Assembly (NCBI RefSeq): GCF_000143415.4
Contig: NW_003314307.1
Span: forward strand, 972,952 to 1,036,951
Direction: 5' to 3'
Source of the DNA: Selaginella moellendorffii
Lineage: Eukaryota > Plantae > Lycopodiophyta
DNA length: 64,000 nt
Both the position numbers and the translations under genes were made by a program. Shown here one piece after another: positions 33,742 through 36,729 of this stretch; position 1 is the first letter of the stretch, and the number at the start of each line of letters is the position of its first letter. Under the pieces are notes generated by a model. The model was not told the origin of the DNA, did not search any database, and worked only from the letters and a program-made list of their open reading frames with translations.

Positions 33742-34475
33742 TCATGAGCTTATAATCTTCACCTGGCCGTCCACCCGACCCATCATCACCCTCCGGCTCT
33801 CCTCAGAGAACAAGGCAAAGATGTTTGGGCCAGTGAGCTTGTCTTTGGTAGCGGCGTGATCAATCACCTTGCAGATATCTTCGAAAACCTTTTCCCTGTC
33901 CATCTGCTCGTACTTGTCACCCTTGAGTACCTCGCTCGCGACGCTCCTGCCACTGCCCACCACCTTCCAATCGTGGGGACTAAACGTCCAGCACTTTGGT
34001 CCCAGCTGCGTCGACAGAGGCGCTACCACGTAAACTTTGCCCTGCCCCGCGATGATCAAGGTGACATCGTCAGCCTGTTTCATGGTGAAGAACTTTGCAG
34101 CATGATCGGCCAGATCAACACCGTCGGCGTCAGGCATCTTTCCTTGGGCATCACTGAAAAAGTCCTCTGCCTGGATAGAAGAGAATAATAACTCACGTCA
34201 GCCAAGAACAAAAACAAAGAAAAAAACAGAAAAAAACAGGACTCAAACCAAACCTCGTGTTTAGCACCGCTGAACGCGAATGCGGTGTTCTTGAGGCTGA
34301 ACATCTTTTGGAAATCCTCGGACAAGACGTGGTTCTTGACGAGTTCCTCGGGATCCATGCTTTCGACCGCGGCCAAGTCGATTTCTCCTTCCTCGTTCAT
34401 CGGCAACTTGACCAGCGCGCGGCCATCCACAGCGAGCACCGTGCCATTGCGATAAACTCCTCCCACTAGCGTTGT
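33742..34475 (-). other. Proteasome beta subunit/HslV-like Ntn-hydrolase domain (216 aa from Thr1), one intron at 34171-34253
   Basis: T1[16 protein letters not shown]17-G-R19, FQK (Lys33 equivalent), FAFSG, VVGSG (Ser129 equivalent) and ATKDKLTG (Asp166/Ser169 equivalents). Confidence 0.8.
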
Positions 34476-36729
34476 GCATGAGATCGGCATGGGAGGTTCC
34501 GTGGCAACCATCTTCTCCGGGACAACGATCTCGTCAAACTCTGCCTCCGTCAGGGCATTGAGTTTCAGGCAAGCCTCCTGATCATAGCGAGAGCAAGGGA
34601 ACAACTTTAGATTGAAACCGGAGTTTTCTTTTCCAAAGTCTTACCTTCAAACTGGTTCCGTCTTTGTGAGCTGTTTTAGCGATTAGAGCAGCTTTGTCAT
34701 AGCCGATTTTCTGCAGGAGATGGTCAGCGACAACACAGAAAACACAGCAGGTATTACCGGATTCAAGGCTGTGACGAGCATGAGCGATTCTCTCAAATGC
34801 TTCGCAATTCTTTCTCTATCGGCTTCAATCCCCATCACACATTTCCTGTTGAAAGAATCGACGGCATCTCCAAGCAATTGGATGGACTGCCATGACAACA
34901 TTATTAGCATAAAAGAAGGTAGAAGTTGGCAGTGAGAGTACATGAAGAAGACATTTCGCGATCAATGGCTTGAACACGTTGAGCTCAAAATTGCCATTCG
35001 ACCCACCAATGGAAATTGCGTGGTGGTTACCCATCACCTACAGAAAAGCCACGATAACAATCGCAAGACCGAAGTTATCAGCAGGGAATACCTGAGCGCA
35101 AACCATCCTCAACGCCTCGCACTGCGTAGGATTGACTTTTCCCTGAAGAACACAGCCATGAAACAGGAAAAACTTTCAAAAAACAACACATACCGGCATA
35201 ATGCTGCTTCCAGGTTCATTCTCCGGCAGCTTTAGCTCTCCCAATCCGCACCGAGGCCCACTAAACATTCCGAAAGTAAATACACAATTCTTACCAAAGC
35301 TCTCTCTCACCTTCCAAGCATGCCGATATCCCACGCGATTTTCATAAGCGAGACCGCGATAGTGTTAAGCGCACCGCTGGCTTCCACGCATGCATCATGT
35401 GTAGCCTGCAACATACATCATATAGCGGAAGGCTCTCACGCACAAGCAAAACACTTACCAGAGCTTCGAACTTGTTCGGAGCAGTGACAAAAGGGAGCCC
35501 AGTCACCTCCGCAACAGCGCTAGCAATCCTCTTGTCAAACCTGAGAGAAGCAGGCAACGTCATTGGCAGCATGGACGTAGAAGCACGTACCCTTTCTTAG
35601 TGTTGAGGCCAGTTCCCACGGCAGTTCCACCTTGTGCAAGCTGCCACAAGAATTTAGAGAGCAATCAGAAGTAAGAGCGCGCTCCTACCTGGTACAGTCG
35701 CGGGAGGGCAGCCTTGATGCGCCTGATCCCGTACTTAAGTTGCGTTGCATATCCGCTAAACTCATGGCCGAGGGTCAAAGGAACAGCGTCCTGGAGATGA
35801 GTTCGGCCGATTTTCACGATATCGTGAAACTCAAACTCCTGAGGAAACGGTAACCAAATTACTGCAGAGTTTCAAACAATGATAAATAGATACCTTGGCA
35901 CGTAAAGTCTTGTACAGCTCTCGAAGGCTCGGGAGCAGCTTGCTGTGAATCTCTCTTACAGCTGCTATGTGCATGACCTGAGTGCAGGATTAAAATCTCA
36001 TTTTCTTGAAGCGAAACGTAAGACAGACTTCAAACTTACAGTAGGAAAAGTGTCGTTTGAAGACTGGCCCCTGTTTACGTGGTCGTTGGGATGCACAAAC
36101 TTTTTACCGGGTTGCTCCCCGAGGATCACAGCTGCGCGGTTTGCAATCACCTAGACACCAAAGTTCTTCCTTTCTCCTATCAAAATGGAAACGAAAGGAA
36201 TGTCTTACTTCATTGGCGTTCATATTTGACTGCGTCCCACTGCCAGTTTGCCACACCACGAGCGGGAACTCAGCATCGTGTTCGCCTTGTGCGACTTCGT
36301 GTGCCGCTTGAACGATCGCGTTTGCGATCTTGGGATCCAAACCATCCGCGACATTCACCTGATAGACAAAGACTTTAAAGCCTCACAGTTTGAAAAGCCA
36401 AAAAAGAAGAACAAAGAAAAAGTAGCAAACCTTTGCAGCGCACATCTTGAGAATGCCAAAAGCGCGCACCAGCGCCAGTGGCATCCGCTCTCTTTCGCCG
36501 CCAATCTGGAAATTCTGGAGCGAGAGCTGTGTCTGAGCTGACCACAACCTGCACGACCGCAATGGATCCAAAATTCACTCGGAATGATTGATTTTCACCT
36601 GTCAGCTGGAATCTGGAGCTTTCTGCTGGGATTCATGGGATCCACTTCTTCCCGGAACGATGATAAATTCCGGAGTAGCACACGAGTGACATTGCGAGTC
36701 CGCGACGCCCTCACCATAGCGCCTATCAT
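33742..36729 (-). CDS. FUM: Class II fumarate hydratase fused in frame to a C-terminal proteasome-beta-like (Ntn threonine protease) domain, 16 exons
   Basis: Arg-rich presequence, then [57 protein letters not shown] and IGYDKAA. The last fumarase exon (starts 34577) reads [40 protein letters not shown]... with no stop until 33742. Confidence 0.85.

Follow-up and report, generated by a model that had tools for sequence, protein, structure and literature searches.

A single gene on the minus strand of Selaginella moellendorffii DNA, at positions 33742–36729 of the 64,000-nucleotide stretch that we analysed (the window: NCBI RefSeq assembly GCF_000143415.4, contig NW_003314307.1, positions 972,952 to 1,036,951 of the forward strand), raises the question of whether one reading frame can encode both a class II fumarase and, joined to its C-terminus, a domain resembling a proteasome beta subunit, and of what would become of such a protein. 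An original prediction, made from the letters of the window alone, had claimed an in-frame fusion of this kind and had proposed that it might be a self-cleaving polyprotein. The fusion exists both in the DNA and in spliced RNA contigs, and we conclude that it is a genuine, transcribed fusion gene in S. moellendorffii.

Removal of 15 GT-AG introns of 47–83 nt each from the minus strand yields one open frame of 2133 nt (710 codons), which begins with an ATG at 36729 and ends with a TGA at 33744–33742. The encoded protein is laid out as a presequence, a complete class II fumarase extending to the sequence PEKM (residue 483), an 11-residue linker, and a tail domain of 216 residues, which is the mature beta-subunit size that had been predicted for it. 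Exons 15 and 16 each begin in phase 0. The positions originally assigned to the end of PEKM (34509), the linker (34508–34476), Thr495 (the presumptive Thr1 of the tail, 34475–34473), intron 15 (34253–34171) and the stop (33742) are correct. The features of the gene are as follows:

36730–36790, minus strand: 5′ untranslated region, without an upstream ATG; its limit is set by RNA contig ends at 36765–36790.
33742–36729, minus strand: whole coding region from the splice model (16 exons, 15 GT-AG introns, 710 codons plus stop), with all 15 joints present in RNA contigs.
36658–36729, minus strand: residues 1–24, the presumed mitochondrial presequence (putative targeting), Arg-rich and without an acidic residue; FumC homology runs from about Phe25.
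34509–36657, minus strand: apparent class II fumarase body, residues 25–483 (exons 1 to 15a, introns included in the range), ending at PEKM.
34476–34508, minus strand: linker, residues 484–494, containing Met490 (34488–34490) and ending with Cys494 (residue −1).
34254–34475, minus strand: probable proteasome-beta/HslV-like domain, part 1, domain residues 1–74 (from Pfam, PDB, HslV alignment and codon check).
34171–34253, minus strand: intron 15, 83 nt, phase 0, inside the proteasome-like domain; the joint 34169/34253 is found in all four RNA runs.
33745–34170, minus strand: probable proteasome-beta/HslV-like domain, part 2, domain residues 75–216 (from Pfam, NCBIfam, PDB and Atlas features).
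33742–33744, minus strand: stop codon TGA.
33676–33741, minus strand: 3′ untranslated region; its limit is set by RNA contig ends at 33676–33764.

The splice model is borne out by RNA. According to a word search, the stretch occurs in runs from seven studies, with shares of 0.65–0.72, the values expected of spliced RNA from which the query's three introns are missing. Contigs assembled from four runs, each from a different study, contain all 15 predicted joints, and the RNA contigs of these four studies match the junction exon (exon 15, 34254–34577, which carries the fumarase end, the linker and the first part of the tail) without a mismatch. In three runs fumarase and tail lie on one and the same contig, and the whole coding sequence is present in single contigs of 2227 nt (33699–36781) and 2147 nt (33764–36765). 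Given contigs from four studies that reproduce the junction exon without a difference, and two contigs that extend over the complete coding sequence, the data exclude a stop codon, a frameshift and a misassembly at the junction. A stop or misassembly following PEKM had been named beforehand as fatal to the fusion, as had a transcript that ends or is spliced out before the beta domain; both the joints and the junction are intact in these contigs. Since there is no stop after the fumarase, any translatable fumarase message must therefore run to 33742. A potential alternative donor directly after PEKM (ATG/GTTGCC) is used by no contig, among the joints listed.

Composition supports a coding character along the whole frame, tail included: GC content at third codon positions (GC3) is 0.69 in the tail and 0.58 in the fumarase part, as against an intron GC of 0.40. 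By our own estimate, the chance that 227 further codons would stay open is about (61/64)^227, or roughly 2e-5. Variants are confined in the tail to L650F and a silent change at G642, and number four in the fumarase part (R427S, silent at R160, A112, M5V); these are too few to measure selection on the fusion gene.

The fumarase part, which was predicted to splice at GT-AG sites into a protein carrying GRTH and GSSIMPGKVN, does contain both motifs in the spliced protein, as GSSIMPGKVN (signature loop GSSxMPxKxN) and GRTHLQDA (the TH(L)QDA histidine motif). It is 64% identical to an alphaproteobacterial FumC over 474 aligned residues and keeps the expected residue at 199 of the 214 columns that are conserved to ≥98% in 120 bacterial FumC proteins. 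A tblastn search with one 50-residue exon retrieved 581 bacterial fumC loci at 63–80% identity. At the other end of the enzyme, residues 1–24 of exon 15 match positions 30–53 of the 54-position FumaraseC_C profile (E = 4.2e-5), a match that falls below the gathering score because the exon 15 piece is a fragment. The sequence PxxM is carried by 119 of the 120 bacterial FumC proteins, and these 119 all end 2–5 residues beyond it; the fusion protein continues for 227 residues after PEKM, in agreement with the earlier claim that the frame runs past the normal fumarase end. Residues 25–483 appear, so far as can be judged from sequence, to make up a whole class II fumarase without obvious defects, its tail being of the usual length. 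The first 25 residues include 5 Arg or Lys and 0 acidic residues, and FumC homology starts at about residue 25; a mitochondrial presequence, as had been suggested, may fairly be inferred.

The fumarase departs from the bacterial near-invariant residues at 15 of the 214 columns, examples being Gly47Ser and Arg52Leu in the WGAQTQRS motif (exon 2, 36431–36547) and Gln223His in GQEF (exon 6, 35689–35838). These columns were taken from bacterial FumC, from which departures that are plant-wide and those specific to the fused copy are not distinguishable.

The two exon-encoded pieces of the tail (74 and 142 residues) were searched apart. The 142-residue piece matches Pfam Proteasome at profile positions 135–184 (E = 5.4e-4, 20.1 bits) and the 74-residue piece matches it at positions 5–25 (E = 0.19, 11.8 bits). 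The Proteasome-family identity originally proposed for the tail is supported by weak, co-linear Pfam matches in both exons, but each of them lies below the gathering score of 22.4; co-linear as they are, the two would be expected to exceed the Pfam threshold together. The 142-residue piece also matches the NCBIfam model for archaeal proteasome beta (positions 124–175, E = 0.013) and a solved proteasome beta type-2 chain in the PDB (E = 0.068), and in an Atlas feature search Proteasome families made up 32 of its 40 nearest clusters. The 74-residue piece aligns with residues 1–21 of a solved proteasome beta subunit in the PDB (E = 1.9), where the entries ranked above it, a designed Kelch-like repeat and villin headpiece, were spurious, and the Atlas feature search with these first 74 domain residues returned no usable match. 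Neither piece matched the NCBIfam HslV models.

A global alignment of the joined tail domain with Escherichia coli HslV, computed by script, scored z = 5.1 over shuffles. In it T1, T2, D17 and G18 coincide, K57 of the tail falls on K33, and Ser147 of its GSG sequence falls on Ser124, with one 24-residue gap inside an acidic stretch at domain residues 21–56. An AlphaFold2 prediction made without an alignment and for the last exon only had a mean predicted local distance difference test score (pLDDT) of 40 and is unreliable; its order of helices and strands is compatible with the alpha-beta-beta-alpha fold of N-terminal nucleophile (Ntn) hydrolases. The tail is very probably a divergent domain of the proteasome-beta/HslV type, within the Ntn hydrolase superfamily, whose catalytic set appears to be intact.

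In proteasome beta subunits Thr1, Lys33 and Asp17 form a catalytic triad, Ser129 and Asp166 (with Ser169) form a second unit, and Gly47 provides the oxyanion hole (PMC4792962); the spacing of Ser129 and Asp166 in active beta subunits is exactly 37 residues (PMC11947121). The corresponding positions of the fusion protein, with domain numbering in brackets, are T495, D511 (17), R513 (19), K551 (57), G564 (70), S641 (147), D678 (184) and T681 (187), located as follows:

34473–34475, minus strand: Thr1 (Thr495), codon checked.
34425–34427, minus strand: Asp17, codon checked.
34419–34421, minus strand: Arg19, codon checked.
34308–34415, minus strand: acidic stretch, domain residues 21–56, between Arg19 and the Lys33 equivalent, where the gap in the HslV global alignment falls.
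34305–34307, minus strand: Lys57 (Lys33 equivalent), codon checked.
34266–34268, minus strand: Gly70 (Gly47 equivalent), codon checked.
33952–33954, minus strand: Ser147 (Ser129 equivalent).
33841–33843, minus strand: Asp184 (Asp166 equivalent).
33832–33834, minus strand: Thr187 (Ser169 equivalent).

The exact spacing that had been noted for T1, D17 and R19 is confirmed, with D511 exactly 16 residues after T495, and the equivalents claimed for Ser129 (in a GSG sequence), Asp166 and Ser169 are likewise present. The distance from S641 to D678 is exactly 37 residues, and the position of Ser169 is occupied by Thr681. The claim of a Lys33 equivalent needs qualification: a lysine is present (K551), but it lies at domain position 57, position 33 itself not being a lysine, and it aligns with HslV Lys33 once an insertion of 24 residues is allowed. 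This insertion belongs to the stretch of domain residues 21–56, which contains 10 acidic and 2 basic residues and is about 24 residues longer than its counterpart in HslV or 20S beta subunits. The Gly47 equivalent, G564, is located 13 residues past the lysine (14 in 20S beta subunits, 12 in HslV), and is paired with HslV Gly48 by the automatic alignment and with Gly45 by eye. The persistence of a full catalytic set in a domain with so little other recognisable similarity is, in our view, the best argument that catalysis, and hence a free Thr1, matters.

The junction itself bears on the origin of the tail. The first four to five residues of the linker correspond in length to a normal fumarase tail, and are followed by Met490, the residues PISC, and Thr1. 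Met490, which the original prediction missed, is positioned five residues before Thr1. Its spacing, combined with the normal length of the fumarase tail, points to an origin by the joining of two genes, and the simplest reading suggested by this arrangement is that a proteasome-like gene once stood by itself, started at its own Met and encoded a four-residue propeptide (MPISC before Thr1), and that it came to be joined to the fumarase gene precisely at the former stop of the latter. If that is correct, Cys(−1) would be native to the domain family and need not block processing. Capture of the tail by a transposon is unsupported rather than excluded: there are no terminal or flanking repeats around 33676–34508, and no second copy is present in the window.

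Searches for relatives of the tail gave uniformly negative results. None was found in a word-indexed database of 5.8 billion proteins, queried with the last exon and with a 174-residue read-through open reading frame (ORF), and a profile built from a bacterial FumC scaffold plus exon pieces returned only bacterial fumarases, with no fused protein or stand-alone relative. An exhaustive phmmer (HMMER) search of 1.84 billion representative proteins with the last exon yielded no match at E ≤ 0.001, not even the fusion protein itself, which probably stands in the representative set as an ordinary fumarase. A metagenome scan with the last exon found nothing, and exact-sequence look-ups for the other haplotype or a neighbouring annotation found none on record. 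These null results agree with a lineage-restricted, fast-evolving family and do not show that one exists.

The most likely fate of the fused protein, which we advance as a candidate only and place close to but short of an even chance, is self-cleavage between Cys494 and Thr495 after mitochondrial import. The 77-kDa precursor would enter mitochondria on the fumarase presequence, and the tail domain would then perform a single-turnover autolysis of the Cys494–Thr495 bond, producing a fumarase of ∼51 kDa with an 11-residue tail and a protein of ∼24 kDa with an N-terminal Thr; a protease or a Connectase-like transpeptidase are candidates for the activity of the released domain. Autolysis is proposed because a catalytic set kept in an otherwise diverged sequence would be useful only with a free Thr1 amino group. 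In the proteasome, Thr1 attacks the carbonyl of Gly(−1) once assembly is complete (PMC4792962), and the reaction is triggered by ring assembly, or the joining of half-complexes (PMC4792962, PMC11947121). Several points weigh against a similar event here. The ring assembly needed for proteasome autolysis (PMC4792962, PMC11947121) is hard to picture on a fumarase tetramer, and the tail domain has no known partner ring or ATPase; residue −1 is Cys494, where autoprocessing subunits use Gly(−1) (PMC4792962); and the 24-residue acidic insertion precedes the Lys33 equivalent in the hairpin which, in known subunits, forms part of the substrate-channel wall, beside the active site. Each Pfam Proteasome match taken alone is under the gathering score of 22.4 (20.1 and 11.8 bits), the fold prediction covers a partial domain at a pLDDT of 40, conservation and selection are not measurable since no homologue of the tail was found, and the contigs do not prove that one RNA molecule spans both parts. 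Nearly as likely, in our view, is that the fusion is real and never cleaved, the proteasome-like domain riding as a passenger on the fumarase tetramer, where it would be inert or else act in binding or regulation. It would then be a product of lineage-specific domain shuffling, its catalytic residues would persist only since the fusion is young, and it would have no protease activity without a free Thr1 amino group. The C-termini of class II fumarases are on the outside of the tetramer, where an appendage may be tolerated. An uncleaved passenger would also fit the Cys rather than Gly at −1, the coupling of known proteasome autolysis to assembly (PMC4792962, PMC11947121), the insertion adjoining the active site, and the lack of relatives among the 1.84 billion representatives or in the metagenome scan. 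It fits less well with the intactness of all six catalytic positions in a barely recognisable domain, including the exact 37-residue spacing of Ser and Asp, with the good representation of the gene in the RNA of four studies, and with a full-length fumarase gene that looks functional.

Two further explanations dispense with a cleaved polyprotein altogether. The locus might give rise to two proteins without proteolysis, an internal promoter or initiation at Met490 yielding a stand-alone proteasome-like protein with a five-residue propeptide and the long frame being one product; this seems to us quite improbable. The placement of Met490 five residues before Thr1 does resemble a short-propeptide layout, and in one run the 3′ contig has a k-mer depth of 838 as compared with 579 for the 5′ contig, contig depth being a poor measure and 3′ bias being common. 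No contig, however, begins near 34490–34600, a single contig covers both parts in three runs, and in the absence of a stop after the fumarase its message runs to 33742 in any case. Internal initiation after many upstream AUGs is also unusual in plants. That the tail belongs to no protein, its frame being open by chance or produced by an error of assembly or read-through, is scarcely credible: its weak family matches and the lack of any homologue would be expected of such an artefact, but the junction exon is exact and intron 15 is spliced in phase in four independent RNA data sets, the probability of 227 open codons is ∼2e-5 and the tail has a coding-like GC3, and neither co-linear Proteasome matches nor the catalytic pattern are expected of a random frame. 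The artefact explanation is already largely refuted. Returning to self-cleavage, a bolder extension, which we consider unlikely, is that the tail domain might be a lineage-specific, self-releasing threonine-protease module that could attach C-terminally to nearly any gene; its self-cut at Thr1 would make it tolerated, and the host protein would serve as both propeptide and organelle ticket, in this case by way of the fumarase presequence into the mitochondrial matrix. If so, the fumarase fusion would represent one instance of a spreading, self-excising family, undescribed for proteasome homologues.

Around the fusion gene, the window contains several other features. A gene for a mitochondrial-type ribosomal protein L36 (36865–37080, plus strand; Pfam Ribosomal_L36, E = 3e-21), the transcript of which is spliced after 37075 according to RNA contigs, is oriented head to head with the fusion gene, ∼135 bp from its start codon. 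The promoter region shared between them (36730–36864) contains two telo-box-like motifs, AAACCCTA at 36756 and TAGGGTTT at 36842. Directly beyond the 3′ end of the fusion gene lies a small ORF of ∼100 residues (33312–33623, minus strand) without a Pfam match. RNA contigs over 33357–33620 show 8 differences in 264 nt (∼3%) and diverge at 33357, whereas the adjoining fumarase gene is matched exactly; the transcripts over this ORF may come from a diverged allele or paralogue.

Further away, a long intron-less ORF of 690–706 residues (40056–42176, plus strand) begins like a signal peptide, contains many N-x-S/T sites and carries a hydrophobic segment at its C-terminus; neither a Pfam match nor an exact entry in a gene-position index was found for it. 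A tRNA-Phe (GAA) gene (18881–18953, plus strand) adjoins a VID27-like gene (19490–21058, minus strand; DUF7135 and VID27 WD40-like domain), the large exon of which stops short of the natural C-terminus and is probably spliced further on. Very AT-rich blocks at 10001–12000 (GC 0.21) and 26001–28000 (GC 0.18) are interspersed between gene-rich stretches with a GC of 0.45–0.6, and overlapping ORFs of 276–291 residues on the two strands at 26118–27031 point to DNA that is repetitive or of low complexity.

The original prediction knew of no described FumC–proteasome-beta fusion, and we likewise found in the searchable literature no paper that describes one or that connects proteasome-like domains with fumarase and Selaginella. 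The known threonine proteases of the proteasome type occur as separate subunits of ring complexes and have short propeptides. Were a copy to retain the full catalytic set while carrying an entire metabolic enzyme at its N-terminus, its architecture would be new, one assembled from known families rather than a new kind of system. The fusion offers a simple test of proteasome-type autolysis outside a ring assembly and with Cys at −1. If it is cleaved, a land plant would deliver a threonine peptidase into its mitochondria on the presequence of another protein; if it is not, it provides a clean example of a housekeeping enzyme that tolerates a young appended domain.

Among known systems, 20S beta subunits (archaeal beta; eukaryotic beta1, beta2 and beta5; PF00227) resemble the tail in mature size (216 residues) and share with it two Thr at the start, matching positions of Asp17 and Arg19, putative equivalents of Lys33 and Gly47, a GSG Ser129 with Asp166 37 residues on, weak co-linear profile matches, and a sequence ahead of Thr1 that would need removal. 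Unlike them, the tail has a Cys at −1, an acidic insertion of 24 residues that separates Arg19 from the Lys, a Thr at 169 and Pfam scores under the gathering threshold; its ‘propeptide’ is a complete enzyme of 494 residues with a presumed mitochondrial presequence, and no alpha ring or assembly partner is known. HslV (ClpQ) has a very similar N-terminal motif (TT.V...RNG.V.A.DG.A), and its T1, D17, K33 and S124 fall on matching residues of the tail (z = 5.1). It differs in its length of ∼175 residues, in having no propeptide (only Met is removed) and in working with the HslU ATPase, and the second half of the tail is closer to 20S beta subunits than to HslV. The mitochondrial HslVU of some protists provides a precedent for a threonine peptidase in an organelle.

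The upstream part agrees with class II fumarases (FumC, FH and plant FUM1) over residues 25–483, at 64% identity to FumC, with both motifs and the FumaraseC_C end. It is unlike bacterial FumC in continuing for 227 residues past PEKM and in differing at 15 of 214 near-invariant columns, for example by an Arg-to-Leu change in QTQRS. The ornithine acetyltransferase Arg7/ArgJ (PMC11947121) is a parallel for the proposed processing, since autolysis before a Thr gives two chains from one translation product by means of a similar catalytic pentad; that protein has another fold, however, and both of its chains stay in one enzyme, whereas the part upstream of the tail is an unrelated, self-sufficient enzyme. 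Connectase (PMC7980362), likened here by its description, is a monomeric and highly divergent proteasome homologue that acts on one specific partner protein, and differs in that it is a stand-alone archaeal ligase. Its example shows that proteasome-like domains are able to function in monomeric form while being nearly unrecognisable by sequence (PMC7980362).

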